A DNA stretch of 64,000 nucleotides, taken from the NCBI RefSeq assembly GCF_006345805.1, contig NW_021835990.1, forward strand, positions 366,824-430,823. Reading direction: 5' to 3'. Below, piece after piece: positions 6,850 to 59,550 of this stretch. Each line of letters opens with the position of its first letter. Position 1 is the first letter of the stretch. The position numbers and the translations under genes are program-made. Origin of the DNA: Octopus sinensis. Lineage: Eukaryota. The notes under the pieces were generated by a model, which ran no database searches, was not told the origin of the DNA, and saw nothing but the letters and a program-made list of their open reading frames with translations.

Positions 6850-7560
6850 CTACTCTGTTTCGTCTATATAACTGTCCATTTTTGTTCTTTACAATTCTAA
6901 GGTACCCATCTTCCCCCAAACACGACCCCAACTATTTTTATATTTAATTTCTATGCCGGTTTTTTATGAGCCAGTATTCTTTTCCATTATCTACCCCATA
7001 TCCAACGAGACACGCTGCATGTACGCTGTTACATCCAGGATCATCAAAAATTCCTATAATGTTATACAATTATACCTCCTGAATACGAATACAAATATTT
7101 CGATATACAAATTGTAATTCCGAAAGGACCAATTTTCAGTAAAGTTCTTAATGCCAAAAAATGGTAAATATTGACATAATCTGTGACTACTATTGGATTG
7201 TTTTTATATCTGCATTCTTTTTTCTATTACAAAGTACAGTTTTATAAACCATTCCAAGATAAGGGTACTGTTCAGTTGTGCTGATTCCCCCATTTTGAAT
7301 GATATATTCATAAGCGTAATACTGGGATCCGCTTTTACATCGACAATATTCACAGCAATCAAGCACGTTTTGTTCACTAAAACTAACCAACTTGTCATGC
7401 TTAATCGCATATTGATCTTCAAGACTGGCAATCTGAAGAGTAATTATTTATTTACCAACCGCGCTGAATATATAACATGATTCACAATTATGCTGATTTT
7501 TGACATTTGTAACTACATTTTTATCTCCAGTCAAAAAATAATGAAAATCCTTTTCATTTT
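6850..7560 (-). pseudogene. Cathepsin L-like cysteine protease, frameshifted mature domain with micro-introns
   Basis: DWR/(frameshift)/VVTNVKNQHNCESCYIFSA, LVSFSEQNVLDC, VHAACLVGYG, YWLIKN, WG..GEDGYLRI. Confidence 0.8.
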
Positions 7561-7690
7561 CTGAGAAAAAAGATGTTCCGTAGTCACTTGTGTCAAAATA
7601 ATTTAATTTGTGTAGCTTTGGAAGTTCATCCTCAGTCTGGGAATATTTCTAACACAAAACAACCATATCTGCGAACGAGTTTATTTCTAG

Positions 7691-8085
7691 TTTTTTTTGT
7701 TAATTAACAATAATTGATTAAAAGACAACGAAAAACGTTAAGTCCCAGCGGCAAGGACGCAGTGTGCGTTGCCTCGAACAATGGCCAGGCCGATGCGCTG
7801 GCGGAACCAGAGGCCCTCTCTCGTGTCCTTGAGCCTCCTCCCGATGGACTACCCGACCTCTTTGAGGAACGAGTCAGTCTCCTTTCCCGCAGCACCAGCG
7901 GTCTCCAGGTGCGATTGCCGTAACACGGTAGCGGTTCGCGAGCGAAGAATATTTTTGTAGTTTCATCTTTTCGGCGTGGTTTGCAGCCGAACAAGGGTTT
8001 GCGGCGGAAGAATGGATCCTCGATTTTGAAAAGGTATCCACAACGGTAACATCCCATACGAGGGCCTTCCCCGACGAGTACGGGA
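7691..8085 (-). mobile_element. CRE-clade 3' fragment (endonuclease domain) with short poly(A)
   Basis: Frame not in the ORF track: IFPYSSGKALVWDVTVVDTF..KLQKY..(frameshift)ETAG..WFRQRIGLAIVRGNA. Confidence 0.85.
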
Positions 8086-8438
8086 ATATCTAGTTGGAAG
8101 GAAATGGCATTTCTTTTAAATTTCAAATTGTGTCTATCAATCAAAGCCAAATTATTTTGAAACTCTGTCTGATTGTATTTTTGTCGCTAAAAATTGTATA
8201 TTTTAAATGCCAACCAAATTTTTTAGTGAACTCTTCCCATCGCTGATTACTTTTTGTGCCATATAAACTAGTTAATTTTTTTCTTTTTTTTTCCCAGAAA
8301 TCTATTTCGGATTTGTAGTGATCAAAATAAGAATTGTCGCGATCAAAATCAGAAAAGATAAAAACAACATTTTTAAATTTGATTAAAAAATTAAAAGAAC
8401 AATTATTCATTAATTGTTTCTATTCTTACATACAAATA

Positions 8439-10261
8439 CAGTGAATCCTCGCAAATTGGCCACCTCGCAAATTGGCCAATTTTTAAATTGGCCAATTTTT
8501 TCACAATTTACTAAGAAAAAAATTAATTTTCTTAGTAAATTGGCCAATTCTCAAATTGGCCACAATTTTTGAATTATTATTTTTTTTAATTAGAAAATAA
8601 ACTATTTTTTTAATCACATGTCTTATAAAATTTCTCGTGGACGTTATACTCGGCTCACTTTTCTTGAAAAAACACAAATTATAAACTACAAGGAAGAAAA
8701 TGACAGTGTTTCGTGTCAGCTTCTGGCTGACAGATTCTCACATTTATTCCACAAGACGATCTCGAGAAAGACGATCAATAATCTACTGCTTAATAAAGAC
8801 TCTATTTTACGGGATTCGAAAATCTATCAAAATTCGTATAAAGCTGCTCACAAACCAAAATTTCCTACGCTTGAAGAAAAATTGATCGAATGGATGGATA
8901 CAATAGAGTCTAAAGGTATTAATTGAAAACCAATTTTTAGGTGGTTTTTTGAATGATTCCTTAATATCGTGTAAGGCTGCGCATTTTGCCGAAGAGCTAC
9001 AACTTAGTAACTTTAAAAATTCTAATGGATTTCTGGCAAAATTCAAAAAGAGACACGGTTTTAGAATGCTAAAATTACATGGAGAGATGCGAACAGATAA
9101 AGTAGTTGACATTAATTCTTTTCGTGAAGAATTTAAAGAAATTTCTAAATCGTATAAGCCTGATCTAATTTATAATTTGGATGAAACTGCATTATACTAC
9201 AAGCTTATTCCATCGAAAAGCGTATGCAGAAACCGATTCCAAGGATACAAAAATTTTAAAGACCGTGTGTCTATTATGCTTTGTTCAAACATGACCGGAA
9301 GTCATAAATTGAAACCTGTGATGATTGGAAAACCAAAAATGCCTAGATGTTTTAAAAATTTTGACTATGGATGTCTTGTCTCATATTATAGCTCACAGAA
9401 AGCTTGGATGACTGGATCTATTTTTATTGATTGGATTATTAGCTTTGATCTCCAGCTTAAAATTAAAAAGAAGAAAATTTTATTGCTAATAGACCACTGT
9501 CCTGCACATTCTATTCCTCAAAACTTGGATTGTATTAAGATTTTATTTTTTCCTAAAAATTCTACTGGATTACTACAACCAATGGATATTGGAATTATAA
9601 AAACCTTCAAGACTCATTTCATGAGAAGAAAGCTACAGTACTTAACTGATTTGCTGGAGACTGAAAATATTTCTGTATACAATTCATACAAAAAATTGAC
9701 ATTAAAAGATGCAATTTTGTTTGTTAATATGGCTTGGGATGACGTATCTACTGAAACTATTCAAAATTGTTTTAAGATTTTAAATGAATCTAATCACGAA
9801 AATACATTAATTGAACATTATGAGACTGAAATTGAAAGAACTGACATTTTCGATCCTCTAATGAGCGAAGATTTTCTAAATATCGAAAACACAGAAGATC
9901 AAGATATAAACGAAAATTGTTTACAAGAGGATCAAGAGTCTGAAATTAGCGACGAAGAGACAAAAATCATATATCCACTCGATAGAAAAGATATTGCAAA
10001 GACATTAACTAGAATAGAAAGGCAACTTTACTGTAATGCAGAAAATGAGAATGATGTTTCGCTGATTACTGCAATAAGAAAATACAAAGAAAATGTAAAA
10101 AGAGCAAATAAAAAGGAATTAGGGATTGAATTTTATTTTAATAAAATTTAAACGTGTTTATTTTATTTTTTAAATATTGATTTTTTTCAAATTGGCCATT
10201 TTCTCAAATTGGCCATAAAATCTCTATGTACCAAAAATGGCCAATTTGCGAGGATTCACTG
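8439..10261 (+). mobile_element. Full-length pogo/Tigger DNA transposon
   Basis: Perfect 24-bp TIRs CAGTGAATCCTCGCAAATTGGCCA (8439-8462 and 10238-10261), TA on both flanks, subterminal AAATTGGCCA repeats. Confidence 0.95.
8618..10151 (+). CDS. pogo transposase (CENP-B-like HTH plus DD30D), 502 aa after removing a 25-nt intron (8916-8940)
   Basis: Splicing gtattaattgaaaaccaatttttag joins ORFs 8618 and 8949 in frame (ESK-GGFLNDS). Motifs YNLDETAL, LIDHCPAH, LQPMDIG. Confidence 0.92.
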
Positions 10262-10899
10262 TATAAGCACGAAGAATCACAATTTTCTTAGGTTAGACTT
10301 GTAAAATATCTTTTCTACATACAATTTAAAAAATTAATTAATAAAGCAGCCGAAATACATTTTCTCATTTTGAATGCTACAAATTTGAAAAAACATCAAA
10401 AATTAAATAAATATAAGTTGGAATTTAATCAAATTTATTTCAAAATTGGGTTTTTCTGAAAAGTACATAGTCGAGATTAATGAAAAGTTACTTTAACTAG
10501 TTTTTAATTAAAGTATTAAAGAGATAACGGCAAAAAATTTGAAATTATCTGGAAAGATTCCCAGTAAAACTCTTCTAAACAACCTGCTAATCTGAAGATG
10601 GGAATCGAAATCGTCCCGTATTCCATGTACCAACATCTCAGCCTAAATACGATGCTAGTCCCCTTTAAAAGGAATTTTATATCAATTCTTTGAGCGTTTC
10701 TCAGATTTAATTAAAACACTTAATAAAAATTTTAAAAATGGTTTTTATAAAAAGTTTGTTAGATCAATTTTTGTAATTAAGTCAATTTTAAATAAAACTA
10801 AGAACAAAATTAAAAAGTCCAGATACTTTTTTTTTATAAATTATGTTAGTTGCCCGTAACTTGCAAAAACAATTTTTATGAACAAACAAAAAAAACACA

Positions 10900-11090
10900 A
10901 GGAAACAAAGAAGCATTTTTTACAAAAAATTATATATCCACAAATACAAGACAATTGATAATTGTTCTTCCAAGTTATTGTTACAAAAATTTTGCGACAG
11001 ACTTAACGGAACCATTTGTATCTGCAAACATTCCACTTTGTAAATTGAGGAATGAAGCAAATATCAGCTTGTCAAAGAAATTTACAAGAT
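10900..11090 (+). mobile_element. hAT (CGGBP1-like) transposase N-terminal remnant
   Basis: FATDLTEPFVSANIPLCKLRN resembles the DL..F..ANIPL.KL.N segment of this hAT group. Confidence 0.45.
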
Positions 11091-11229
11091 TGATTTCTCT
11101 TCAAATTTTTCTATCATCAGTAAAATTATTAATGACACTATTGGAAATAAAAAGCCAAAAAGGTTAAAAATCAACAACAGGAGTAGCACTAGCAGTCTGC
11201 AAAGAATACTTCATTTTAGCCGGATAGTT

Positions 11230-13700
11230 GGTATTATTAATCAATGAATAAGATATCCCTACCATAACACACAATTTCTACCATCCAACACTTCATAGAA
11301 ATTCCCCCTCCACATCACAAAAGAATCACTTTCGTCAATCTCCATCTCTACAGTCCCAGCCTGCACTGTCAAAATCTAGAATTTTATACCTCACAACTAA
11401 CTAAATATATCCCCTCCTAAGTCACTAACGGCTTTCTAGAATGAGGAAACAGCACCAACAATCCAAATAAATTGGGCCTGTCATCACAGTGGGAATACAC
11501 CGCGTGTGTCTCAAAGGACTCCAACAGTTGTACTCTCCTCACAATCGACACTAAACAAACTAATAAACACTAAAATAACACTGATCTCGAACTTCCCTCA
11601 AATTAGAAGTAAATTGAGGAATAATGACATTATTGGGTTTTGACTTGATTGGGTCGTTATGAACTAAATTGACTTTATACCAACTCACGATATGAACGGA
11701 GGTGTTTTGTTATCCCCACAATCTGCAACCCATAGCCAAAGTCCGAATATTTAATCCTCTCTCCATTAAAAGGGTCTAGCCCGACCACTCGTACTCGATT
11801 TGACTGGCGAGATGACAACGGGTTCAATTCAGGCACAACTTTGAATTAGTTACACACAAACTTATTCTAGCTCGGATTCCATCCGCTGCCAATCGCTATG
11901 TACGTTTAGTTAACAAGCCCATACCTCGTTGATTCCCTCAAATCTGGCGATTATGTCAGCGATAGGTTCTTCATCGGCTATGGGCATCATCGAATCATTT
12001 ATTCTGCCACTTGAGAGACGTGTCCTTTTATTACGTCGTTTTTTCTTAGCCTTCCTGATATATATACTAATATTAAATAAAACCACTTTCGGGGTGATCC
12101 ATCAGGGATATCAGCCATCATCAGATCCGTCCCAATTTGTTTATCAACCATTACCGGAGAATTAATTTCCATAACCACTTTCTCTGCTAAAATTTCATCA
12201 GTATACAGACTAGGATCACTAAAAATGTGTATCAGGACACAACATACCCAACTTTGACGGAATTTGTTACTCGAATTGGACTATTGAGTTCCGAATTTAC
12301 AGTCGAAGAGGGGGAAAATGACACATTAGGATTATTTTCAATAAACATGTTGCCGGAATTCAATGATTCTCGATTTTTGTTCAAGGAGGGGCCAACGAGG
12401 ATCACATCCTCAGGTTCGCTATCAGAACTACCAATAAAAGTGACTCGTCTTTTTTTTTCTTCGATAGATATTCCTCAAAATCAAAATGAACACCTTCCTT
12501 CTCAACAATCTTACCCACCTCGCCAAAATGAGTCTTGTTCTTGCTCTTGTCTCGACTGGAAAGGTTTTCACGTGCAGTCGTGTTTCGACCTTTCTTTAAA
12601 ATGGACACTGTCGATTTGGAATGAGGGACACCAGTGGTCACTTGTCCAAAATTAGGATTCTTTTGATGGATGACAGGCTCATCTTGTATTATATTACTTT
12701 TGGCTTTAGAGTTTTCCTTATTGTATAATCTTTTCGAGTTTTTTGACGACTTTTTTGACAAATTTGAATCAGATATATTCAAATTAGAACCTTCGTGGCC
12801 CATAACAGTCTCTTGTCCCAAGAAATGCGTTTTATCAGAATTTTTATCATAGGAAACTTCACAAGTGCGATTATTATGGCTATTTTTGGCCATTCTTGAA
12901 ACTCTCTTGGTTGAATTTCTGCTATTTTCAACACCAGAAGGTAATTCGTAGATGATTTCGACATCTTCTATCTCGTGTCCCGAGGATTGGGGGTTCTCAT
13001 AAGCCAAATCAGAGAAATAATCACTTCTATCCACATCTGTCCCAGCTTGAAATCCCAAAGATATCATTTCAGGTCTATTCTGACTCTTTTGTGTAGAGTC
13101 TCTTTGAACTGAGGCGATTGAGATATCCTGGGGATCATCCCTCCATAAAGGGTTTTGCCTTTCTTGCTCAATACTCATCTTGTAGGTCGAATTCGGCCAC
13201 TTTGAGTGAGAAACCTCACGAGTAATCAATCCTTGTACAGGTCCTCCAATTGAGGATTTTAATAACTTTGTTAAATTGGCATATTCAGAGCTTCTTAGCA
13301 TGTCATCCATGATAGGGGACTCCCCAGTGAACAATTCGGCGGTTTTTTCAGATTTTTTGCTATTTCTGCCCACATTTGATGACCTTGGTTGGAATTTTAC
13401 TACTGATGGATGATTTGTCTTATCTTTCGGTGCTGAAAATAAACGTAGATAGTTATTCTGTGGGATTAAGATGGAATTTTTAACCAAAATGCTCCTGTCT
13501 TGTATTGGTGGAGGATTTCCATGGCTCTGTTCTTCGTAACGAGTGCTTTCTAATCCGCTAATGTCGTGATCTTGGTCATTTGGGTGGATTTGGATTTCTG
13601 GTTGTTTAGAGCAGGGCAATTACCGTCAGGGAGAAGAAGCTTGTGCGTTTTTTTATTTCCAAGTTCCTTTAATATTCTTTTTTTACTAAAAGTTGTTATT
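11230..13700 (-). CDS. CENPC: CENP-C-like inner kinetochore protein (multi-exon; one homopolymer frameshift near 12450; start and some exon ends unresolved)
   Basis: Long low-complexity N-terminal region (ORF 12402-13619). CENP-C-like motif RQSNRVRVVGLDPFNGERIKY at 11747-11809. Cupin-like FGLLVLFPHSRKP and TVQAGTVEMEIDESDSFVMWRGNFYEV near 11270-11480. Several 23-30 nt GT-AG introns. Confidence 0.7.
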
Positions 13701-15009
13701 ATTTGACATTATTTTTGAAGATTAAAATATAATTAATATTAATTTTATACAATCGTCGATCCATTGTTGCTCTGAATAAACACACAAGTTGTTGTTGCGT
13801 AATAAATTAATATGCGCCATTATATATTTGGTTTATATTAAAATTAATTTGTGTGATTTACGATAACGTATTTTTTAGGAAAATACTATCAAGCGGAAAA
13901 AACGACTTTGATTTGAAACTAAACAGTTCTAAGCTGATTTGTTAATTCTATTGTTCAACAAAAGCTTTAAGTTTTCCTGAAGCGACAAAAAATTTGTTTT
14001 GAAAGTAAAGGTTGTTTTCCGATAGAAGGGTCCTTATTTTGTCAAAAATGTTTATTTATTTAATAAGTTTTGGTCAACAATAAAAATTAAAACTTATTTA
14101 TTAGATCAGCATATCCGCCTTTGAGAAAATTTTTGTAGAAGCTGTGCCATCAAATTTAGCTTTTTTTAAATGCGTACACTTTAGTCTGAGCAAAGTAGAA
14201 ATCTATTAAAAGAGGAGTGGAGACGACTTAGGGAGATGAACTGGCTGAGAAAAGTGGATTTGATTTTGATTTTGAACATTCCACTGAGTTTATGGTAATA
14301 GGCGATACACTTGAATCCTCATTACAGTTGGCTGTCGTTGTTTTGCTAGTTGAGTGAATATCTAGAATAATATTTTGTATTTTATTTCGAAATACCTGAT
14401 AGTTTTTGGAAATTGTTAGAAATAAGTTTTTTTTAATATTTTATAAAAAATTAAGTTTTTTTATTCAAGGTGTAAAATTGAATTATTTTAATAGTTTTTC
14501 GGAAAGCAATTTCAATAAGAAGTGGTAACGACGTGCTCATCACTACCAGCAAGCAAATGAGAAATAACTTTAAAGCAGGTGCCAGCTAAGAATCTTTCCT
14601 GAAATACAATTCTCCGATTGATAAAGAAAATGTCAATTTCAATGTCTATAATTAAAAATTATTATAAAAAACATCCAAAAATCGGAAAAGAAGTTGTTTC
14701 AAAAAAGTAAGAGAAAGAGTTTTTTTCAACCGTTTATCTTCTTACTAGTTAAATTATTGTAGTCACATTATCTTTTTAAACTCACTGATTACATTATCTT
14801 CATTATGAACAAACCAAGAGAAAACCAGTTTGTAAATTTTTTTCAGATTATGGAAAATAATTGATAAAGAAACAAGTACATGCACACTTTATTGGCTTAT
14901 TATTTGGAAATTAACGTAGCGATTATTTGTTTATTACTAAAAAAATATATTTTAGAATCCAAATTTTCAACGGATGTTGAAATTGTATTTTGTAAAATAG
15001 TTGAAATTG

Positions 15010-15270
15010 TGAGCAGTCAATTCCCAGAAATGCATTCGGGCGGGCGGGAAGCACAACGACCTGGACGACGTGGGGAAGGACTCGTACCACATTCTTTGAA
15101 ATGCTAGGAAACTGGTCATTCGGGTGTCCATTCATTCCCCAGTTATGTGTTGAGGCGCATTCTCAGACGGGCTCTCCACTTTTTTTATAACCAAACTGGG
15201 AGCAAAAGAAGGGTGTTTCCATCAGCTGGTGAACACTGTGCTCAGAATGATGGGCCAGTTCTTCCCTGAG
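15010..15270 (+). pseudogene. AARS1: Alanyl-tRNA synthetase fragment, internally deleted and frameshifted
   Basis: NSQKCIRAGGKHNDLDDVGKD.YH/FFEMLGNWSFG joined through a 19-nt GT-AG to YVLRRILRRA..KLG..FPE. Confidence 0.9.
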
Positions 15271-15313
15271 AAGATACAATGATGAATATGATGAATGAGC
15301 TAAATAATGAGCT

Positions 15314-15412: not shown

Positions 15413-15904
15413 ACCAACTCTGATTTGAATTTTAAAGGTTGCACAGATATATGTCAGAAAAATAACCCAAAAAATAATCGACTTCATGAAGAATTAGATT
15501 GAATATTTATGTCAAGAATTAATATTTTATTATTTTTTCAAACTATTCTATCATTAGATGCACGTTTAGAAATATACAAAAATCATATTTAGAAAAACTC
15601 CATTATTTTTTGATAACTTTTCTCTAGTTTCTAGGTCGGCAAAAGCTGGCTTGCGTGCTTTTATAGACTGTAGTTATTAAAATAAGAATAGACACCCCGG
15701 TAAAAACTAATAGTCAAGTTAAAAACGTCAAGTTAGATATTTTTGTGTTTGATCTATCGAAAAATCAGAGAACGGTAAATGAACTCGGGGTCACATCCCA
15801 AGAAAACTTAAAGAAAAGGGTTTATTTTAAACAGCGCTTATCATCCGCATACAAAAAATTGGCTTAAAGCACTCCCTATATCAGCATGGGATTATTACTG
15901 AACA

Positions 15905-17060
15905 ATAAATCATGGCCAAGTAAGGCCTGTCGATTTCGAAAAATATCAAATTCTCTGACCGAATGCTATAAATTGCCTTTTCCTCGTCGACAAAATCGTG
16001 GTATTGGTGGTTTGTTAACGATTCCTGTCATGAAGGCAATAACCTACCTTCACCATATAATTTAATATCTAATTTAATAAAGAAATCGACACTTTCTTCT
16101 CCTTCGTCTCAAATGTTACTGAATTGGGGAAGGTTGAGGGAATCATACACCAAATGGCATCCATGTCCAACTCCAATGGACGACTATAATATTCCACACA
16201 CATAAAACCCGATTGTTTTCTTGATTATCTGAGCTCCAGTGTTACATATGACTCCCGCCATTTCCATGCTGTACCAACGTGCTCTATACGGTGGTTAACC
16301 AACTCAACACTTTCCGAATTACGTATCCATAAAATGAATTGAGAATACATTTGTGGGCTGATTGTAGCGAGTCGTAAATTATTAGCATTTCTGAACAGTT
16401 TTGTACAACTGAAGCACATTCCCCATTTTTTGTAGCTTCAGACAATTTTTTCTGCCAAACTTTGCACAATTCCTTATATTTGTAACGACGATCACGGAAA
16501 TCACGGACTGTGTTTATGTAGAAAGCATTGGCTCTCTGACACACCGTGACTTTCCGTTCAGTCACAACTGGCACGTGGACTCGGTGGTACACTTTGTGGC
16601 AATAATCTGAAAATATCAGCAAAAAATCAGTCAGACCTTTCAGACGTTTATTTTTGATCATTTTCTGCTCTTCTACTGGAATTTGCTGAAAGTGCATAAA
16701 AGCTTTTAGTTTTTCTGACCAAAATGATTCGTTGTTGAGTTGACGTTCTATCAATTTGAGTTCACCGGATGTAGCAGGCACTAAAATACGTTTTGACTAT
16801 AAACTGATTTGTCTTCGCCACCGCAATGTCATTGCCCGATGGCAGTTCAAATTGTGCTTACTGAAGGCACACGAAGGACAGACATTGTCATCTACCATTG
16901 CATAGGGCTAACATAATATAAAACAGTTACAACCTGCAGTCTGTTTGTTAGGATGACATTCGGGTACATTGCGCCAACATCGAGGTGATAAATCAATGGA
17001 TTGGCCGTAAAACACAAATTTTCTCTTAGTGCTTCAACCTTGTCTGTCAATGATGATAAA
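15905..17060 (-). pseudogene. POLE: DNA polymerase epsilon catalytic subunit fragment 1 (palm/fingers), truncated at both ends
   Basis: [80 protein letters not shown]. Introns of 24-30 nt. Confidence 0.92.
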
Positions 17061-18060
17061 ATCTTTAATAAAATTAGAAAATAAAAACCTCGTCGAAATT
17101 AAGGAAAATTCCAGCATAAAAAACGAATATAAAAAGCCGACGGCGCATCGTGTGTGTGTACTTGTCTAATGTCAGTGTCAGTTTGTGTTTGTCGAAGAGG
17201 CTCTTTTGTCACAATCCTTTCTGATAATGAGAGGGTGCTTGCATTTGGTCTCTTTATTTTTTTACTAGGAGAATGATGATCAGGTTGTCTACGATGAAAT
17301 GTTTGAGACTCCTGAGGAGGGAGTTTCTACACTTGTGAGACGGCTTTCGGATGCTGGATTTACTCAGACAAGCAATTTTGAATTCGAGACAGATGCCCCA
17401 GACGATGAGATTGTCTCTGCTCTCACTGAGGGCACTGGTTAAGTCTTCTTGTTTTTTCTAACTTGATTTGGTTTCTAAAATTTTTGGTTTTATTCTTAGT
17501 TAGACAGTAAAGTTGATTTTTCATTTTTGACAATTCCTTTGTTATTTAGTCGATAATTTATTTTGATGTTTTCACACTCGATTTAAATTGATTCATGCTT
17601 TATAAATTTTTAAAAGCAATTTGTTTTAGGAAATGTCAAAATAAGTAGTTTGACCTACATTTTGTATTTATATCAATCAAGTTTACATAATATTCAGTTT
17701 TGAACACGTTTTATAATCAACTATGTTAGCTTAGGGTTCAAAAAAAGATATTAAAGATCTAAGCGCATACAACGATTTAAGCTAGATTATATAAAATATA
17801 TATGATCTATAAGTAATGTATCGACAAGTTATTAGTAATGATATAGATACGTGAAAACAATGATAACACTAATTATTTAAAAAGAATTTTATGAAATATT
17901 TTTGTATTAGAAATTAATGAATTTATGCATAAATAAATATTTATTATAGTACATAAAATTATGGTGAATATGAATTTTAAAAATAATCTGAGGTTAACGA
18001 TATGGAGTAACAAAATTGAGATTGGAGTGTTTTTTAATCATTTCTTCTCGAATATCCAGC

Positions 18061-18250: not shown

Positions 18251-18612
18251 TAATCCAGAAGATCGCCTCGCTTGTTACACGTGTGGGATTATAACTTTGA
18301 TTATGTTCCTACGGACAGAGTCTTTTTTTCAACACAACTGACTGTATGTAGGTCCAAGTTCCATCTTCAACAAACAATCATTCGTTTCATAATCCCTAAG
18401 CATATTATATACATACGTAAATTTTAACACTATTTTATATCTTGAGAATATTTTTGATTCCTCATCCTTTGCCATCTGATTTTCCCAAAAACTGTTTTCG
18501 ATTTCTATGGTAATCATCTATTTTTCATAATAAACTTCAAGCTAAATGGAAACATTTCTAGAACTGCAAAAAATCATTTATTAAAATTTCATGTCTTCTA
18601 AAACTAATTTCG

Positions 18613-18800
18613 CCGGTTAATTCTAAGCACTCCTCCCACGAATAATAATTTTTTCTCATTCTTTGTTGAAATAAAAATATCATTTTGATTAAAAAATACT
18701 TTTTAATTGCAACCTTGTCTCCAGTTGATTTAACAATCCCCGTATATACAATTCCATACGTTCCATCTCCGAGAATTTTTGAAAATGAATATTTATCCAT
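18613..18800 (-). pseudogene. MAK: MAK/ICK-family kinase, N-terminal about 50 codons only
   Basis: MDKY...LGDGTYG.V...VAIK, a 39-nt intron, then MRKNYYSWEEC. Similarity stops before subdomain III is complete. Confidence 0.8.
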
Positions 18801-18958
18801 GTATTTATTTAGATACTACCAAATGTCATTAAACATCAAAACTTAAGAAAACCAAATGACCTTCTAACTTTATAATCAATATGTTTCCTTTCCTTTTTTT
18901 TTTTTTTTTTTGGGTTTTTTTTTTTTTTAATTAAGTAAATTATGATGTTAATTTATGA

Positions 18959-19379: not shown

Positions 19380-20500
19380 CAAATAACAGCATCAGGAATT
19401 TTGAAACTTATTTTAACGAATAAATCTGGTAATATACTATTCATTAAAAACACAAAATTAAAAAATGATGTTATGCCAATTCAGAGTAGGATCCACACCC
19501 GTACAATAATATATATTTTTTCATTTTGACAAGTGAGACCAATCAGAACAGCTCGGGAAAATCTTTGAAAATACTTTTCCTTCCCAGAGGGGAACTTCAT
19601 CTGAATCATTAAAAAGTTCTACAAATGCAACAGAAGAGTCAAAATCAAAACAAGCTGTTTTAAAAAAATATTTAAAAATAATTATAGCTGCAAACTTTTA
19701 CCGAAAAGATCCTTTCCTTCCCACAATTTTCTTAAAAGCTCTCAAATCAATTGTAGGTTTATTAACTATAGTCCGAAAAGGAAATTTTTCATTGGAAAAT
19801 TGATACCCAACCACAAGAGGGCCCTGAGGAGCAGCTAACAAGTATGGAAATTTCTCAGTGCTAAAATTAATTGACCTTACCTATTAATAAGTAAATATAC
19901 TACGATTAATACAGTTTCATTAAGTCTTTGAGCAAAACAAGATCCGGACTTTATATTCAGAGGAATTGAAGCTTTTTTAATAGATGTTTTATCCCATATT
20001 TTTGAGATATGTTCCTCTAGAATATCATCAGGTTGAATATGAGAGAGATCGAAGGACTTCTCATTGCTCTGTTTTATTATCGAACTATTAAATAACAACC
20101 ATCTGAGTTCTATTACTACTCTTATTCTCGATTCTCGAAGAAAGTTCATTCCCAAAAGTCCTTGAATCCCTGAGAGCCGAACTTGGGTGATATCGAGGTT
20201 TATTTACCTAAAAAATAAGATTAAATAAGTATTAACTATTTGCTGACTTGGATGTTTCCACATATTTTTCGATTTAAAGAAGTTTAAACAACTTTAATGG
20301 CTGTAAGCTTTCAGTTCGGGCTTGAAAACGTCAGTATTGTTTAAAAATTCGAGATATTCAGAAGATAAAAGGAAAATTCGGAAATAATTGTTCTTCAAAA
20401 AAACGTAAGTCTCAGATTTAGCTTCTTTGAATAATTTCTTAAATTCAACAGATTCGTCCTTCATATTGACACTTAGATATATCCGACTAGCCATTTCAGG
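19380..20500 (-). CDS. Unidentified multi-exon host gene or gene fragment
   Basis: ORFs 19877-20155 and 20294-20494 plus further open stretches separated by short GT-AG segments. No confident family match. Confidence 0.35.
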
Positions 20501-21251
20501 AGAAAGACAAGAAATATTCTCGCGAATAAAAAACCGATGATAAAGAGATTTAACATGGTTGTAAAAAACAATTGGTTCGGTGATTTTGATAATTCAAAAT
20601 AAAATTCAAAATTTACAAGCAAAATAAAAGTCAAGACAGTCTCCAAGGTTTAACTTATCAAGGAATATCTTAAATCCCATTAATCCCTTTGAGTTTTTGA
20701 GTAGTTCATCAAAAGTGTTGAACCAAGAAGGCTCGTTGTTTTTCACGGATGTGATTTCAGCGCCGTTATCCATTTGATTTGTAATCCACTAAAGGAGGCA
20801 TCATCTGAGGCACAACCACTGCGCGCTTGCGTGGGTACTCGTGAGGAAAATCGGGTCAAAACGAGGAGTCTTCTCCTACGTGTTGGAATCACGAAATGTT
20901 ACTTGTCCTGTCTTTCGTATTTCTAATGGGAAATTGTTATGTTAATTAAGTGGAAAAGACATTGAGAGAGACGAAAACTTTATAGATCGCATGATAACCA
21001 AATATTTTTGCAAAGCGTGATAAATTTGATTTTCTAACTTCAAATTTTCCTAGAACTAAATTTCCAAATTTAGAAATTAGAAATTGTACAACGGTTGGTA
21101 GAAATCGAGAAGTGAGGTCTTTGGGGTAGCGAAATCTAATCCCTTTGAACCTTTTTAAAGTGGTAATTAGATCAAAACAAATAATTTTTCGATAGTAAAA
21201 ATAAGAAAACAAATTCACTTAATTTGAATGAAATGTTAGAAATATAGACAA

Positions 21252-37810: not shown

Positions 37811-37821
37811 TACAAAAAACT

Positions 37822-48223: not shown

Positions 48224-48770
48224 TTATAGAACAGGGTAACTTGCAGCTGTAGCGATTCCACATTGGTTGTTTTTACTTCGAGACATTTTGATATATCCTT
48301 CCTCACCCCAGGATGGACCCCAACTAAATTGTAAAGACAAGATACCAGACCTATTTTTCACAAGCCAAAAATCTCTTCCATCTTCCACACCGTACCCAAC
48401 TACTAAAACACCGTGATCCAATTCAGAAGAGGAACAGTCAGGATTATCATAAATCCCTGCAAATATAAGAGTTCAAAAATTACCCCCGCTGTAATGCATA
48501 AAAGATTTATAGGATGCGTCAATTCCTACCGAAATTGGTCCGATTTTTGCAACGGCCTTCTGAAGCTGAACTTTCGACCCTTTTTCGATGTCTTCATAGG
48601 ATACCACAGTCAGAGTATTCTCGACGTATCGACATGTTCCAATCAACAAATAAAAAAATTTATTCTACCTTCCCTTCGTATGGATATTCACGCTCAGTAT
48701 CAAGTCCTCGATTTTGTATGATATATTCAAAGACGTCGTCCATGAGTCCTCCATTGCAACACCGGCTTTC
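48224..48770 (-). pseudogene. Cathepsin L-like 3' half (no catalytic-Cys exon seen)
   Basis: [41 protein letters not shown]|[24 protein letters not shown]. Confidence 0.88.
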
Positions 48771-49799
48771 AGTATGACAGGTGATAGACACACTAACTAA
48801 ACTTTGAATGTTCCAAAACTTACTTTGTGATGTAATCAAGCATGGGAAAATTTTCTTACAGCAAAAAGTTCTAATTTTATTTTTTCTCTAGCTCTGTAAG
48901 CCTCCGAGAGAATGTGGCCTCGCAGAATAAATTTCAAGAAATGACTGGATCGGCAGCAGCAAATGAGATACACAAAAATATTGGGTTCTTGAAAATAAAC
49001 CCGAGTCTTATTGAGACTCTTCACAATATGGAATATAATGAATGACGGACACATTCTCAAACTTGGTCTGATTATGCAAAGAATATGATATTAAGCCCAA
49101 AGAGAATAATGCATTAAACATAGCAGTTCTCCATTCATTCAGCAAGGATAGCATATTAAAAGAATTTGACAGAAACATTGTGCAAGAAATTATATATATT
49201 AAATTTTTGTGCACAGTTTCAACAAATTTAAGAAATAGAGACTACAAAATAAATGCTAAATACAAAAATACATTAGTCTGTTCATGCATCTGTTCAATCA
49301 GCCCAACCAGCTCCGTTCCGACCTGATTAATGCAAATCAACTCATCCTATATATAACTTTCAGATCAAATTCACGATAATTACTCGGTATGACATAACTT
49401 CAGAAGTTGATTGCTTCAATTCATTTTGAGCAATTTTAGAAACAGAAATATTAATCTCATCCGATTTGGATTCCGAAAGAGCTCTCTCTTCTTTAATAGG
49501 TTTTGGAAGACCAGATCTCTGGGATACAGATTGTGGCACTTTAAACGGACTTGGAGTCTTTTTTCCAAAACAAGGTTGTGGAAAAGCTTCAAATACTTGT
49601 TTACGCCTTTGTAAATATATTTCATTATTTAAATGATCAACGTTGGCAGAAACTTCATTTACTTTCTCGTATACCTAAAAATTGATTAAAAATAATTAAA
49701 ACCACTTTTAATCCTAATGATTGATTGTAAATTATATTTAATACTGATTGTAATTGACTCAAAATTCTTATCGTTGTTGTGGTGTTGTGCATGTCCGTT

Positions 49800-50544
49800 T
49801 TTATCAATAAGAAGAAAACGAATCCCATGGGCCTTTCTGCAGAATCAAATAATAAAAACAGTATAGTGGATGCAGGAGTGTTGTCTCTGGGGCTGGATAA
49901 CGGCACAAGAACTAATATTAACAATAATCCTACAGTTGGAAGTCGTGCTGCACCAACTAACTTTTATTCTCTGTCCGCCATTATTAAGGATGTCAAGTGT
50001 GTCTCTAGACTGAATGGGTGTCTCAGGTGTTCTATGCTTTAAAGAAAGATTTGGAAGGATGCCTAGAGGTGGCTGGGATCTCATTCTGAAAGAGTTCAAT
50101 GAAAAATACTTAAAGTGCTTAAGTCTGTGCCAACTAAAAAATGGTCAAACCACTAAATGGGAATCAAAATGTAGGGAAAAGAGGCGATTGTAGTGAAGGA
50201 AAATCTAACATGAATATTGAAATTTCTAACTTCAAGAATTGTCTAGAAGAACTCAAAGTCCAACTCGAAAGAATCAAATCTATTCCTAGAGAGTCTCGAA
50301 AACCTACCCCAAAATCCAAAAAAATAAAGTGAAAACTAATATTCTGTCTGGATTGAATTCTGCAATTTATCGTATTACAGAAGATAATCCTCCACAAAAT
50401 ATGGATCAGATTACAGACATATTATATGCTGCACAGTGTGCTTATTTGGCCTTAACTATAAGACCTAAAACAAAAAGAACATGGTTGGAAAATACAGAAA
50501 ACAAAATTTCGAAATTAGCAGCTGAAATTTTAAATATGAAATAA
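49800..50544 (+). mobile_element. Probable N-terminal region of an R4-like non-LTR element
   Basis: ILYAAQCAY....KTKRTWLENTENKISKL resembles the pre-RT region of R4/Dong-like ORFs. Confidence 0.45.
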
Positions 50545-50554
50545 ACGGCAATCA

Positions 50555-50830
50555 TGTCACTTCCCCCGGGTCCGCTGCGGAAAAGGCTGAGACGGCCAAA
50601 ATTAAAAAATACCAAGAACTCGAATTCCGCCTTATATTCGCACCAATCGCTTTGGAGACATCGGGCGTCGCCGGGCTTCTAATCTCGGCCTTCATCAGCG
50701 ACATCGAGAGGAAATTGGCCCACAGGATGAAAGAGCCACGCGAAGTTTCGCGGCGTTTCCTCTCTGCCCATTGTTAACTTAATTTGTTTTTATTTGGGTT
50801 AAAAAAACTTAAATAAAAAAAAGTCTATGA
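50555..50830 (+). mobile_element. CRE-clade 3' fragment
   Basis: PGSAAEKAETAKIKKY..FAPIALETSG..FISDIERKLAHRMKEPRE, followed by A-runs. Confidence 0.78.
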
Positions 50831-50994
50831 AATTATCAATTTATTTGAAAATTGATATGATTTATTTGTATTAAGAATATACGAATTAAAAAGAAATAAA
50901 TACGTGTCTACAAAATTAGTACAAAATTCTAAAAAGATTAAAACACATAAACATTTTTAAAAGCCTTACCATTTGGAAAAAACCACCGCAACCT

Positions 50995-51880
50995 GGAGGA
51001 AGAAGGTCGAATGCAATGCAGTTTTGAATGGCTGTGAGAATCCACTGCAGTTGTCCGTGCAGAGTCTTCCGGTCTTTGGGACTGCCGGCCAGTCTATGAG
51101 AGTGAAGTGGATGCAATACTCGACTGGCAGGAACTCCCCGTGGTACGCGTGCCTGCTCGACATTTGACTAATAATGGGAAGCGAGGTCATACAAATTGAG
51201 GGACAGCAGCACTGGGGATAAAAGACAGCACGTGAACAAGTCGGCGCGGAGTCCCTCAGCGCGAGGAAGTGACTCGCCGTGTGAGCAAGCAGCGAAATGA
51301 ATCCTTATCGGGGAATGTGTTCTGAATGGGACAGGAGGACTAACTTGGAAAAGACTGACGATGGTAGCTGCAGATGACGTGTCGAATATGAAAATGGACG
51401 GGGCCTTGAGGTGTTCCACCATCAGCTCGTTGTCCACCTCGACCATCCGCCCCCTATCGACTACCCACATCTTGTCAGAGGGAGGCAGATTAACTCCACA
51501 GTAGTGGAAGACTGCCCAGTTGTCCTAATACGTCTGCATTGCCCGAATCACCCCAATGTGCTTCCTCGACTCTGCGCATTTGTTGAGCAGTGACGGCAGG
51601 TCAGGCTTAGTCAGGGCCTTGAATACTGTCCCTCTGTTGTCGAGAGTCCGGTAGAGTCCTTTCAGTCTCTTGGCAATATCTCTGAAGGTGTAGAACGGGT
51701 ATCTCAGACGGACATCTGAAGTGTTGTGGGCAGATTAACCAATCCAAGTGAAGAGGGGGAAGGTATCTATGACTAGTTCGTTCAGCTCGTCCTCCCTGTC
51801 AATGATTGAGCACTTGGATGACGCTCAGAGTTCTTGATAATATTACATTCCCACCTGACCGAGGTGCCACTCTCACAAAT
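50995..51880 (-). pseudogene. RPTOR: Raptor N-terminal conserved (RNC) region fragment
   Basis: VFHYCG..P....WV, PSIFIFD.S.A..IV..F, IHFAAC....LP....L.ADLFTCCL..P, G...DRKTLHGQLQWILTAI..CIAFDLLP, then abrupt truncation. Confidence 0.85.
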
Positions 51881-51901
51881 TACAGTCTCCTTGCATAGTC
51901 T

Positions 51902-52328
51902 ACTATTATTATTATTATTATTTAAAGACCAATACGGGCAAGCCAGTTAATTATAGGTTATTCCCGTGATCGCCGATCCAAACGAGGGAGATCCTTCTGA
52001 AAGGTTCAATCCTTCCCGCAAGATCGGCTGAGACGACGATGTCCCAGGGTCTGAGAAGCTAAGAGTCCTTTTTCGGAAGGCATTAAGTGCTTCCTGAGCG
52101 TTGCCATATCCGAAGGATTTCCAAGAAATGACATGTGGACCCCGTAACGCCACGCTAAGCCGGAAGGTAAGAGATCCCATTTCCAACTGTGTCGTGCCAG
52201 AAGTACTCGTTGCCTCACGGGCAGGGGAACGATAACGAGAATTAGCCCCAGGTTAAAACTGTCCTCCTTCGGAATCGAACTCACGACATCCAACCATTAT
52301 CCATAGCTTAGTCTTCAGCCAAGGGGAC
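51902..52328 (-). mobile_element. tRNA-derived SINE, copy 1, with (TAA)n tail
   Basis: Head GTCCCCTTGGCTGAAG..GTTCGATTCC..GGAGGAC (A-box and B-box like), about 340-bp body, TAA repeats at 51902-51923. Confidence 0.75.
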
Positions 52329-52482
52329 TATGTATTCACATATGACTCCGCAATGTTCATACACTTAATTATTTATAACAACATTCTAAATATTTAAGAC
52401 AGTAGAGGAGTCTCAAGAAATAAGTGCTAAAGGACATCAGATGCAGGCAACTCAAAGACGGTTTGGGCGAATTGAGATCACT

Positions 52483-52835
52483 GACTCGGCTATAGATAAT
52501 GGATTTGGACAGTCGTGGGTTCGAATCCGAAGGAGGCTAGTTTCATCCTGGGCCATTCTCAATTCTCGTTATCGTTCCTCTGCCCGCGAGGCAATGAGTA
52601 CTTCTGGCACGACACAGTTGAAAAATGGGGATTTCTTATTTTCATTCCGGTCTTATCGTGACGTTATGGGGTCCACCATATCAGTTGGAACTCCCAATCG
52701 GATATGGAAACGCTCAGGAGGCACTTAATGCCTACCGAAAAAAGGACTTCTAGAACTCTGATCCTGGGACATCGTCATCTCAGTCCGATCATGTGGGCAG
52801 GATCGAACCTTTCAGAAGGATCTCCCTCGCTTGAA
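52483..52835 (+). mobile_element. tRNA-derived SINE, copy 2, diverged and tail-less
   Basis: Colinear with copy 1 (GTTCGAATCCGAAGGAGG, GAGTACTTCTGGCACGACACAGTTG, GAACCTTTCAGAAGGATCTCCCTCG). Confidence 0.75.
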
Positions 52836-52849
52836 TCACGGAGAGTGTC

Positions 52850-54560
52850 TGCTGGGTTAACCTGCATTGCTACCTTCAATATGACAGCTCCTGTGATTTG
52901 TGGGGACTGTTCATGTTGACAGAAAGTGGGGACATCCGAGTTGAGTCCGACTGCACTGATTGTACAAACCAAACTAATATAAGTGCGTGGTCTCCCAAGG
53001 ACTTTGGTTCCACTAAAATGGTCTCTGTAATGTTCCATCAGACACTCCCGGTAGTAGAGGGAGGTGACTGAGGGAGAACTGAGAGGAGTGCCCTACCAAT
53101 GAACACCCCTCTCGTGATGGGAAATGATTTGATTGCTGAACAGACGGGAGTTATGTTCTTCTGTCCTCGACTACTGTATTTGTCATCTCCGCCCACAACG
53201 AGTTCATCTGCAATGCCAAGTGAGGGTCACCAGAATATAATTGCCTCCTCATCACTCATCCGTCCGTCAATCAGGGAGTGGCTGAGCAAAGAATCGAATC
53301 ACTCCTTTGCGGAGAATGCCCCTCGAGAGCAGATTGGAGAGGACAGAACAGCAGGAATGTGTGAATGCGAGTCTGTGATGACCAACACGCCTTACTGGTC
53401 CCCAAGTTGAGCATCCGCATCTCCAAGTTGTACAGAGTGTCAGAAAAGTCCACTTCCAGTTTCACGTCGTTCTCGAGCCAGTCGATTGGAGTGCTCGGCC
53501 AACTCAGCAGCAATCTGGAATGACCGAAGAAGGCATCTGCAGGAGAGAAGAGTCAATGGTTGGGTCAGCCTCGTCCTCCTCCACTCCCCACGTGCCCAGA
53601 CAACGACGGGGACACAACTCGTTGTACCGTTTCTGGCACTCCACTCTGCTTCGATTGGACATGTACAGACTCACTCACGTAGAATAACATTCTAACCTTC
53701 CTTGAAGGACACTCGGTCACCCAAACACAGACTGTCCACTACTTCCAGCAAAATGTCATCCTCGGCAGACCCCCATGTCCTGCATACTCCACACAAACCA
53801 CCTGTTCTGATGCGATGACCGAATCTTCTGGTACCTCTGCAGACAAAAGAAAGGAGTCCTCCGAGTCTAGTCTGAATCAGTCAGAATACCCCCAATTGGG
53901 CAGCCACAGTACACCAACTGTGATCCCCGTGCTCTTTCACCAACTCCATTATCCTCTTCCCCCGACGACGAACAAGTGTTAATGGAAGGGTGGCAGAGAT
54001 TGTTCCACAGTGGCCGAACTGAGTTATTCAACCGCCTACCCTGCCAACAATCCTCGTCAAGTCGACCAGAGGGGAGTGTCTTTCAGGGAGGTAGTCTTCC
54101 ACGGGGGCACTCTTGATGTCCTCGATCTCCCTGTCCACCTCACTCATCAAATCAGCCGCTCTCTGTTCTGGGAATATGCTCTCTTTGCTGCAATGTGAGA
54201 ATGATGTACTAGGCAAGCAGTCCGTCTATTTTTAGTTTCTTTTGCTGCTGGGATATCAGTCTTTTCAACTCCTCCACCATCCTGGTTTTCACTGCAGTCT
54301 CACCCGACAGTACTACAGCAACGGAGAGTCCGCACAAGTCCCGAGACTTCCCCCGAGGCCTTCTTGGTGAGGACGTCGTCGTTGTGGGGAGGGATCTGGG
54401 AGATGACCCATATATATACCCCATTCGAGTCCGTGAAGTAATTGGTGAAAATTAGTGGAATCCAGGAGGTTGAGGGGAAACGATCGAGTTGGCTGATTCC
54501 AGGATTTGAGTCAATTTCTCGCTGACAAGTAAGTGTTGTGGCTTACTATATAGTTGTCGC
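52850..54560 (-). pseudogene. SNAPC4: SNAPC4/SNAP190-like Myb-repeat protein, degenerate
   Basis: PPHNDD..TKKASG, EIEDIKSAPVEDYL, WNNLCHPSIN..S.EED, ELVKEHG..SW..VA.QLGTRRTPFFCLQRY, RSRVECQKRY...GTWGVEED. Frameshifts. Boundaries uncertain. Confidence 0.65.
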
Positions 54561-57759: not shown

Positions 57760-57910
57760 TTTCTGTGTTCATGCAAATAAGCAACCTGGCTTCGATAACT
57801 GCGTTATTCTCAATGAGAAATTTTACTACTTCCTTGTGTCCGTTTAAGGCAGGCAAGTCGAGGAGCGTATTGGAGTTTTCACCTTAGCTGTGGATCAACC
57901 ATGTTTGCAA
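57760..57910 (-). pseudogene. Ankyrin-repeat fragment
   Basis: LLDLPALNGHKEVVKFLIENNAVIEAR, one repeat; flanks broken. Confidence 0.55.
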
Positions 57911-58442
57911 GGATTTTGACAACACTGCTGTTTCCGTTTAATAAAATACTTTAAAAATCCATTTTGACCTCTAAAATGCATTCACTGTCATTTTTGAGAG
58001 TACAGTTGGTTTATGAGAATTTGTAGATAACTAAAAACGACTTTTGACACCTCAACAATTTTGATCGCACTTCTTTGTATCCTTATTTCAGCTATCTGGA
58101 GCATCACTAAGATATGCGCTCTAATATTTACACTCTTTATAAGCTACTAGGTAGAATTGTGTTTTAATTAAAATAATGTTTGTTTTATTAATAAATTATC
58201 TTAATTTTTGGTTATCCAATTATTAATAAAAAACCTAATAAATTATTCCACGTGTAATCACGCGTTTGGCATACCTTGTTGTTTTGTTACATTATTTGTT
58301 AGATCATAATTTTTTTATTTAATTGGATTCAGAAGGGATATTTCGCGATGTAGTTTCTTTTAATTTTTAAATTATTTGAAATTTCATTATTTTGTAATAT
58401 TTGTAAGTTTATTCCTTCAATCTGTATATTCTACTTATTCTG

Positions 58443-58670
58443 TATATTCTTTTTATTAATTTATTGTTGTCAACTCCTGTTGATTGTTTATTTTCATATT
58501 TTATTTGTTTAATATTCCTTTTTATTAATTTATTGTTGTCAACTCCTGTTGATTGTTTATTGCCTTATTTAATTCGTTATTTTCAAACCATAATATTCCT
58601 TTTTATCAATTTATTGTTGTCAACTCCTTTTGATTGTTTATTGCCATATTTTATTCGTTATTTTCAAAAG
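58443..58670. repeat. Three imperfect tandem copies of an AT-rich unit of about 70-80 bp
   Basis: ttttattaatttattgttgtcaactcctgttgattgtttatt repeated three times. Confidence 0.85.
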
Positions 58671-59269
58671 ATTAAAATATTTAATTAGGACTTTCAATCC
58701 TGATTGATTGATAGTCTTTCTTCTCTTTTTAGGAGAAGTTTGTCAATTTGTCGGAATAGAGTTTGGATGTTCAAATTATTCCCACACCCTCAGAGTTGCC
58801 AAGCATGTGATTAAACAGTCTCTGGACTGTCTCCAAATCCAAACCCTACACTTCACTACAGATCAAAATCGGAAAGTACTGCGAGTCGAGGAAATCAAAG
58901 TCAGAAAAAAATAAATTGTCCTCAAATCGCAAACTGGTCATGATGCAATCAATTTGGACCTCAATTAACCAACCCGTGATGATTCCCGCATGCCAAATGA
59001 ATGGAGTAATCGTTAGTATATTCACCTGGGTTGCCACTGTTTGGTAATTCTCTCAACATTTCTTTAAGTCTGCAAATAGAACAGCACATCGAGGCGTCGA
59101 CGGCGATTCCCGACACAAATCGGATAATTCAGAGGGTGAGGTGGAAAATCTTTTAGAGTATTCATTTTTCAGAATGATCAAAATTTCTAATGAATTTCAC
59201 TTTCCATTCCAAATAAAAATTGTTAAAGCTAAATTAATTTCCCTAGAAAACTCGCCAAAGTAATTTCTG

Positions 59270-59550
59270 TGTAGGTGGCAGCCATTGGTGGTGTCCCCAA
59301 TGGACTAGTTGATGTGTGGGAGGCGACAGGAGGCCGGAAGGAGACGATGCATACGTGGGACACTACTCGAAATCACAATTTGGGATGTAGCTATGCTTGT
59401 AGGAAACGGATTGACAGAATGTACTTAAAAAGTGATTTACTGACACCTATTCACTTCGAATTGGTGGGTTTAGAGATCGTGCCTAACACTCAACTGTTTC
59501 TCAGCGATCACTGGGGGATGTTGCACATTTTGTTCTTTAAATTTTCTTTT
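59270..59550 (+). pseudogene. TDP2: Tyrosyl-DNA phosphodiesterase 2 C-terminal exon (catalytic middle not found upstream)
   Basis: GGVPNGLVDVWEATG....HTWDT..N.NL....C..RIDR...LVGLE....FLSDHWG. Confidence 0.78.

Follow-up and report, generated by a model that had tools for sequence, protein, structure and literature searches.

Side-by-side fragments of essential genes in a contig of the Octopus sinensis assembly: probable remnants of eroded segmental duplications in a dicyemid genome

How do internal pieces of unrelated, essential genes come to lie directly side by side in a eukaryotic genome? This question is raised by a stretch of 64,000 nucleotides, the whole of which is called the window in the following. 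It represents positions 366,824-430,823, i.e. the terminal 64 kb, of the record VCDQ01000373.1 (430,823 bp) in the NCBI assembly GCA_006345805.1, the genome that Li et al. 2020 reported for Octopus sinensis, on which an open reading frame (ORF) of the window (42,173-42,856, minus strand) is a called gene. The window contains no Ns and has a G+C content of about 36%. Between positions 6,850 and 59,550 a preliminary description had recognized fragments of many housekeeping genes and ascribed them to a systematic process of gene-fragment capture or shuffling. We identified the gene pieces by Pfam profile and PDB sequence searches as well as by direct reading of ORFs and introns, and compared them with related DNA on other contigs. 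Collectively, our data make it probable that the mosaic consists of duplicated multi-gene segments, which deletions, inserted transposons and, to some extent, local rearrangement have eroded in the genome of a dicyemid parasite.

The most compact part of the mosaic comprises five pieces between 33,470 and 40,774. It starts with the C-terminal half of BLTP2/Hobbit (33,470-37,300, minus strand; Pfam Hobbit, profile positions ~1226-1983 and beyond, E 2e-47), the top library match of which falls on amino acids ~1709-1852 of 2225 and which, from reading, probably reaches the natural stop and C-terminus. It is followed by a piece of the DNA polymerase gene POLE, named piece 2 here (37,690-38,250, minus strand), corresponding to human residues ~941-1082 and perhaps up to ~1135 (PDB E 1.6e-21, Pfam POL2_thumb, and reading), and by a piece of POLR3A (RPC1; 38,300-39,791, minus strand) that covers amino acids ~310-692 by search and ~215-710 by reading (PDB E 3.4e-41, Pfam Rpb1 domains 1-3). 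Head-to-head with the latter lies the start of a USP catalytic domain from the Cys box to the QQDAHEF box (39,792-40,131, plus strand; Pfam UCH 1-32, ORF reading). The last piece belongs to a glycogen phosphorylase gene, PYG (40,132-40,774, plus strand; amino acids ~545-735, profile 424-617 of 713, Pfam Phosphorylase E 1.8e-68, alignments to three other loci), and is cut off 9 nt inside an intron at its start and 16 nt into an exon at its end.

Three close relatives of the PYG ORF and four more of the adjacent cyclin gene, all filed under Octopus sinensis, provided seven further stretches of parasite DNA for comparison (L002 to L008). Window 34,410-40,768 has a colinear counterpart in L003 (VCDQ01013216.1) at 1.1-4.4% substitutions, and all four BLTP2|POLE|POLR3A|USP|PYG junctions recur there, although extra POLR3A sequence is kept at 39,791|39,792. 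On its reverse complement, L005 (20 kb from the start of VCDQ01001570.1) runs colinear to 32,170-58,295 of the window; all four junctions are present, and over the 10.96 kb of 32,170-43,130 it shows 36 differences and not a single large indel. Hence, the direct abutment of these five pieces in the preliminary description has been verified. L007 has the PYG-cyclin part in common with the window, carrying an 8.4-kb transposon insertion. Finally, L008, which belongs to the scaffold of the window and precedes it by 1.2-21.7 kb, repeats the order satellite (80% identity), PIF1 helicase relic (82%) and cyclin (98-100%, interrupted) about 46-54 kb upstream. Because this order is repeated on one and the same scaffold, true segmental duplication does happen in this genome.

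Micro-introns have been kept in every piece with more than one exon. Those of the POLE, AARS1 and PYG pieces, as read from the sequence, are GT-AG introns of 21-29 nt with one of 40 nt. They measure 23-27 nt in the other POLE piece (piece 1, minus strand), 28, ~27 and 21 nt in POLE piece 2, 29 and 40 nt in AARS1, and 25 nt in PYG, where the intron position matches that of an intact PYG gene on another contig (L004). The pattern of processed pseudogenes or retrocopies, i.e. removed introns and poly(A), was not found, introns being present throughout. Copying at the DNA level and not via mRNA, as already proposed in the preliminary description, follows from these retained introns.

The decay noted there is evident as well. 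POLE piece 1 has an in-frame TAG in place of a conserved Ala, while in piece 2 one acceptor site is gone and a 13-nt insert breaks the frame. The AARS1 relic (14,870-15,280, plus strand) matches human AlaRS amino acids 61-91 in PDB at ~15,010-15,100, the remainder being assigned by reading; its N-terminal bit (amino acids ~45-100) is joined straight to a bit around the YVLRRILRR motif, the latter again recognized by reading, such that ~225 internal residues are gone, and two frameshifts were read in addition. The PYG piece is devoid of the catalytic KRIHEYKRQ motif and shows 53% identity to outgroups, compared to 65% for the intact gene on L004. Among each other, the relic copies differ by 2-3%, with changes scattered over the codon positions. 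The pieces are thus unprocessed pseudogenes, because they combine retained introns with stops, frameshifts and internal deletions. A dynamic-programming test for spliced ORFs was not used to judge the intactness of the fragments, because GT...AG pairs are too frequent to discriminate.

How the pieces were trimmed becomes visible when the copies are compared, which differ above all in what has been lost from them. At the junction 39,791|39,792, where POLR3A around amino acid 215 is joined to the exon with the USP Cys box in the window, L003 has 2.45 kb instead, and this stretch still has coding sequence for the N-terminal zinc region of RPC1 (amino acids 47-160) head-to-head with USP; L003 in turn is without the 115-nt USP exon. 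It follows from these complementary losses that in the common ancestor POLR3A was present from its start and stood head-to-head with USP, a different part of this gene pair having since been lost from each copy. L003 is also without window 38,007-38,247, a loss that occurred between GGAAxT repeats. All large differences between window and L005 (seven out of seven) are sequences missing from L005, with overlaps of 2-20 nt at the junctions. Two of these losses, 49,520-53,932 (4.4 kb including the RPTOR piece) and 54,005-54,160, leave an 82-nt island between unrelated sequences, which illustrates a way in which a short fragment with abrupt ends can arise. The window PYG piece is a subset of the L002 copy at both ends: L002 extends into the upstream exon and intron, and its 3' end is ~60 nt longer.

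The arrangement of the pieces is in line with such trimming. POLR3A, POLE and BLTP2 have the same orientation and each is without the end facing the next, USP and PYG also share their orientation, and adjacent pieces are without precisely those ends that a single deletion across neighbours would take. Moreover, natural gene ends and co-duplicated flanks were found, namely RPC1 amino acids 47-160 on L003, the apparent C-terminus of BLTP2 and the 26-kb colinearity with L005.

We therefore propose, as a working model, that segments with several neighbouring genes would have been duplicated as DNA, including introns and natural ends. The redundant copies then lost their function, a stage that is documented by stops, frameshifts, the loss of a catalytic motif and substitutions between the copies that are near-neutral. 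Subsequently, many deletions, often reaching from inside one gene into its neighbour, would have trimmed the copies until internal pieces of different genes abutted in the former orientation of the neighbours; trimming as such is visible in the differences between copies, from which we extrapolate to the origin of each junction by deletion. Transposon insertions and further segmental duplication of already decayed blocks, both of them observed, added to the patchwork. Probably, excised DNA was also relocated locally at least once, as suggested by the two POLE pieces with their common breakpoint. With regard to break-repair insertion, which the preliminary description had listed as candidate mechanism, some relocation may indeed be needed for these POLE pieces.

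POLE piece 1 (15,880-17,100, minus strand; human amino acids ~603-942, PDB E 3.5e-70 with four aligned stretches, and reading) ends at residue 916, and piece 2 starts at 915-917 in the numbering of PDB chain 9ne9 (human amino acids ~941-943). The G+C content at third codon positions (GC3) is alike, 0.365 and 0.376. Because the ends meet at one residue and GC3 is equal, a single break seems to have separated both pieces; however, on the same strand piece 2 is found 20.7 kb "upstream" of piece 1, in the manner of a circular permutation. A third POLE piece (human amino acids ~195-290) is located on L008 (20004-20327, record positions ~345,314-345,637), 37 kb further on and on the same strand, where it directly adjoins the upstream satellite copy. 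The order of the pieces could result from excision of the segment lost at the POLR3A|POLE junction and its nearby re-insertion, or from a circular intermediate that was re-opened. It is the sole feature that still speaks for some shuffling. A scrambled gene of the ciliate type, with segments summing up to an intact gene, was not found, since the pieces cover only amino acids ~195-290 and 603-1135 of 2286 and contain a stop and frameshifts.

What the preliminary description missed is the non-host origin of this DNA, a micro-intron parasite that was co-assembled with Octopus sinensis. The contig is best read as nuclear DNA of a Dicyema-like renal parasite that was assembled and annotated together with its host, because it combines micro-introns, metazoan-specific genes (Axin RGS+DIX) and an octopus host. 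In 51 animal genomes, introns shorter than 30 nt have been reported only for myxobolid myxozoans and Dicyema japonicum (PMC13644364), and the median intron of Dicyema is 27 nt (PMC6543705). Dicyemid introns are mostly below 30 nt, with a median of ~26-27 nt, and the introns read in the window pieces and in the PYG gene on L004 agree with this. For D. japonicum a GC content of 36.7%, a repeat share of 48.9% and introns of 38 nt on average were given (PMC6736024), and the GC of ~36% and the repeat load of the window agree with these values. Axin RGS+DIX, BLTP2 and RPTOR were detected as metazoan content, and Octopus sinensis is a cephalopod host. The closest relatives found for BLTP2 and POLE are just 45-48% identical. 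An Rfam scan of the whole window gave no matches.

Locating the intact parents, as recommended in the preliminary description, succeeded only in part. An intact PYG gene exists on L004 (VCDQ01002408.1, 1.03 Mb; 8546-11432). This complete gene of ~2.9 kb opens, by spliced-ORF dynamic programming, on removal of nothing but GT-AG introns of 19-28 nt and yields a frame of 864 codons before exact intron trimming. It was considered as direct parent of the fragment and rejected: in 441 nt the window piece differs from it at 16, 13 and 75 sites of codon positions 1, 2 and 3, with dN 0.125, dS ~1.5 and a strong third-position bias. Because of the dS of ~1.5 it is an old paralogue or an orthologue from another dicyemid species. 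Most of the divergence between both accrued under selection, and the fragment lineage lost constraint afterwards. Regarding the other genes, the protein search was confined to matches below ~1.75 times the query length and among these revealed only relatives of 35-48% identity for BLTP2 and POLE, so its silence on full-length parents is no evidence; the representative protein library yielded no parents for the other genes. Two observations on PYG may be added. The L004 gene is annotated merely as a 166-aa "muscle form-like" protein, and L002 (10480-11665) carries a PYG relic in which a C-terminal piece (plus strand) is joined to an inverted N-terminal piece (minus strand) of the same gene lineage.

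Several points weigh against the proposed origin of the mosaic from eroded duplications in a dicyemid. The founding multi-gene duplication, with functional POLR3A, POLE, BLTP2, USP and PYG genes as neighbours, is inferred. Likewise, an intact gene was found for PYG alone, and it is too diverged to be the direct parent. The stretches L003, L005 and L007 may represent different haplotypes within a pooled population of parasites instead of paralogues. The assignment to dicyemids is based on gene architecture and host rather than on a match to a Dicyema reference. Finally, deletion alone fails to account for the permuted POLE pieces, and no simple insertion yields their order either.

The surroundings of the five-gene block were also analyzed for traces of mobile elements that could have assembled it. 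The repeat context between the piece groups (25,678-33,215, plus strand; Tandem Repeats Finder, Pfam PIF1 and repeat search) consists of a 95-nt satellite (36 copies, 96% matches, 25678-29086), directly downstream of which a truncated PIF1/Helitron-type helicase follows at 29.7-30.7 kb, ~3 kb away from the block, and of a hAT-like transposase relic (31650-33215) that has short subterminal repeats on both sides (AAGGTCCTAAAAAT and variants). Including these, the relics of transposons in the range comprise LINE reverse transcriptase, restriction-like endonuclease, pogo, Tc1/mariner, integrase, hAT-like and PIF1 helicase sequences. A Helitron Rep domain was not found next to the C-terminal PIF1-helicase relic; the 5'-TC...CTRR-3' termini are too degenerate a motif as long as copy ends are undefined and were not searched systematically. 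Copies of the Helitron type, with common array ends in differing flanks, were not observed, since L005 matches the window over 32.2-58.3 kb and L007 matches across the cyclin. The block is not a discrete mobile unit, because the colinearity of L005 goes far beyond it. Around 33.0-41.6 kb no convincing terminal inverted or direct repeats were detected, the best inverted pair having 19 nt and 84% complementarity, and no inverted repeat pairs the ends of this region as expected for capture by transposons of the Pack-MULE/CACTA type. The PYG piece was also tried as a mobile unit, as its exact 5' end seemed to be common with L002 among different neighbours; this was rejected, because L002 runs on upstream and the end marks the deletion edge of the window. 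As a side observation, a second instance of the satellite-helicase order, with ~80% identity, lies on this scaffold 46 kb upstream (L008 18250-19621).

In the light of these results, active capture or shuffling, by which free pieces (Helitron-transduced, excised or circular) were inserted at breaks and the mosaic was built piecewise, appears unlikely. The nearby helicase fragment, the POLE pieces with one breakpoint and permuted order, which fit excision and re-insertion or a re-opened circle, the inverted joining within PYG on L002 and the extrachromosomal circles reported in dicyemids (PMC6543705) could all be taken as support for it. Nevertheless, the helicase is itself a relic without Rep domain, terminal inverted repeats are missing at the flanks of the block, copies are colinear over at least 26 kb and beyond the block, their differences are deletions and not fresh insertions of gene pieces, and the PYG end in common with L002 was only apparent. 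The systematic process as formulated in the preliminary description is therefore not upheld. Regarding the junctions, which it had advised to inspect, overlaps of 2-20 nt were found at the window/L005 deletions; no Rep-helicase gene or terminal repeats bound the mosaic. A different origin would be germline-limited DNA that is eliminated or rearranged in somatic cells, the relics being stranded paralogues as on germline-restricted or B chromosomes. We regard this as improbable. Dicyemids are reported to eliminate chromatin, to undergo selective amplification and to have circular DNAs (PMC6543705), and the repeat-rich region with satellites, duplicated decayed genes and its location at a contig end would be compatible; however, apparently intact genes are interspersed (the cyclin, and PCMT1 and SAR1 in L008), and germline limitation would be compatible with decay by deletion instead of being an alternative to it. 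An equally speculative extension, for which we see a slim chance, assumes that the mosaics are footprints of developmental DNA rearrangement in dicyemids, in which excised or circularised pieces were re-inserted nearby, with the permuted POLE as a scar and the region being germline-limited.

The remaining two explanations concern the record itself. The junctions could come from chimeric long reads or mis-joins of a low-coverage contaminant; chimeric junctions were named in the preliminary description as a condition that would overturn it. It speaks for an artefact that this contaminant contig belongs to a PacBio assembly, that L003 has many 1-nt indels typical of consensus errors, and that the junctions of the AT-rich left part (around AARS1, POLE piece 1 and the kinase) are not confirmed by another copy. 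On the other side, the junctions are found again, completely or partly, on three further contigs, the window is free of Ns, and random chimeras would not recur in independent contigs. As these contigs carry substitutions and indels of their own, the mosaic is no chimera of the assembly, and an artefact is very improbable. Even less credible, to the point of being nearly negligible, is a horizontal transfer of parasite DNA into the octopus genome. It is suggested by the filing of the record as Octopus sinensis and of its proteins in RefSeq under that name, but micro-intron genes and relics span all 64 kb and the neighbouring 20 kb and are also present on contigs of 0.35-1.03 Mb, including the intact PYG gene, and no host-type gene was seen at any locus examined.

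Taking the eroded duplications as the preferred explanation, the mosaic is an example of the known kind of unprocessed pseudogene mosaics in segmental duplications, found in an unusual organism. The pericentromeric and subtelomeric duplicons of primates are alike in having intron-retaining partial copies of unrelated genes side by side within repeats, in the re-duplication of blocks, and in decay via point lesions and deletions. They differ in that the genome represented by the window is compact (~70 Mb) with micro-introns, has pieces of five genes within a few kb, and has a founding duplication that is deduced. Gene capture by Helitrons and by Pack-MULE/CACTA elements in maize, rice and bats also generates chimeric, intron-bearing multi-gene arrays in mixed orientation and multiple copies. 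In contrast, no Rep gene, bounding termini or terminal inverted repeats were found in the window, the copies share more than the array, one copy keeps the N-terminal region of a gene, and adjacent pieces behave as trimmed neighbours. Reductive genomes of the Mycobacterium leprae type resemble the window in that many relics are removed by deletion bias and copies vary in the presence or absence of relics, whereas in the window it is redundant copies of essential eukaryotic genes that became relics and not the sole copies of dispensable ones. Duplicated fragmentary ordinary genes together with satellites and transposons are also a feature shared with B and germline-restricted chromosomes, and Dicyema is itself reported to rearrange its DNA, with chromatin elimination and circular DNAs (Noto et al. 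2003, as cited in PMC6543705).

The findings have consequences for database users, because the Octopus sinensis reference holds parasite contigs of up to ~1 Mb, whose proteins sit in RefSeq/UniRef as octopus proteins and can mislead analyses into spurious gene-family expansions or unfounded claims of horizontal transfer. Among the proteins encoded by such micro-intron contigs (17.8 kb-1.03 Mb; window 39578-42856 and loci L002-L008) are the phosphorylases XP_029657430.1, XP_036354618.1, XP_036354384.1 and XP_036354903.1 and the cyclins XP_029657596.1, XP_029657530.1, XP_029657428.1 and XP_029656853.1. On the other hand, these contigs represent an unplanned long-read assembly of a dicyemid genome, and earlier dicyemid assemblies were hindered by rearranged and circular DNA (PMC6543705).

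Dicyemids have a reduced genome with ~5,000 genes. This "reduced" genome nonetheless carries decaying extra copies of essential genes. Since kilobase deletions still differ among copies, the deletion process that shrinks the genome is observable and datable here. If the region should turn out to be germline-limited, it would offer the first sequence-level handle on dicyemid chromatin elimination, and a true link to DNA elimination or circular DNA would considerably raise the interest in this locus.

Outside of the five-gene block, the mosaic contains additional pieces. A first cathepsin L-like piece (6,830-7,650, minus strand; Pfam Peptidase_C1 profile 11-106, ORF reading) includes only the mature domain without the propeptide and adjoins a LINE endonuclease fragment. 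The second one (48,230-48,800, minus strand; Peptidase_C1 profile 56-220, E 3.9e-44, ORF reading) is without the propeptide and the Cys25 region. A piece of the N-terminal caspase-like domain of RPTOR lies at 51,348-51,686 (minus strand; Pfam Raptor_N, PDB), and the C-terminal ~85 amino acids of TDP2 at 59,275-59,540 (plus strand; PDB E 2.9e-16, chain residues 160-244 of 250). Together with AARS1, both POLE pieces, BLTP2, POLR3A, USP and PYG, these identifications of the preliminary description were confirmed by Pfam or PDB close to where it had placed them. In the case of MAK, a CMGC-type kinase of ~55 N-terminal amino acids is supported at 18,561-18,815 (minus strand; Pfam Pkinase 1-32, weak PDB kinase matches) with one in-frame intron of ~39 nt, but its identity as MAK is based on reading. 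SNAPC4 could not be substantiated, as the 50-56 kb block gave no Pfam or PDB support even at E values up to 5. This block harbours an inverted duplication within GC-rich sequence (51950-52750), the arms of which (52,180-52,243 and 52,561-52,624) are 94% complementary and encode similar, possibly Myb-like peptides on opposite strands that may correspond to the former "SNAPC4". The GC-rich blocks (34-40 kb, 51-55 kb) were also considered as foreign relative to the AT-rich pieces, which was rejected: GC is gene-specific, both POLE pieces have a GC3 of 0.37, and intermediate values were obtained for the cyclin and PYG pieces.

Not all genes in the range are fragments. An Axin-like stretch with RGS and DIX domains (19,560-20,560, minus strand; Pfam RGS, DIX) may be a genuine gene and provide context to the pieces, and there is a C2H2 zinc-finger ORF. 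The cyclin (41,967-42,856, minus strand; Pfam, called gene) has N and C domains, is apparently intact and occurs in at least five copies of at least 90% identity on four contigs. In the region 41240-42856, compared with L005-L008, the N-terminus of the copies on L006, L007 and L008 differs from window position 42,718 onward. These divergent N-termini are preceded by sequence starting TGCCAGTTTTTTT, which is also the start of a LINE-like insertion with an (AAT)n tail on L003. Over the exon with the USP Cys box (39,792-39,952) the window has 11 substitutions in 160 nt compared to L005, with ~0.2% elsewhere; this cluster suggests a gene-conversion patch from another USP copy.

Further pieces were noticed beyond those listed in the preliminary description, such as a bit of an MDP-1-type acid phosphatase (60852-60962) and an ankyrin repeat (57788-57883). 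Just upstream of the window, L008 (150-800, 8185-8600) encodes PCMT1, SAR1 and the C-terminus of a GH31 glucosidase. Finally, an ORF of 254 codons (45836-46600) consists mostly of a 33-nt (11-aa) tandem repeat (DEYYxSNELNM...), and the length of this array is unequal between window and L005.

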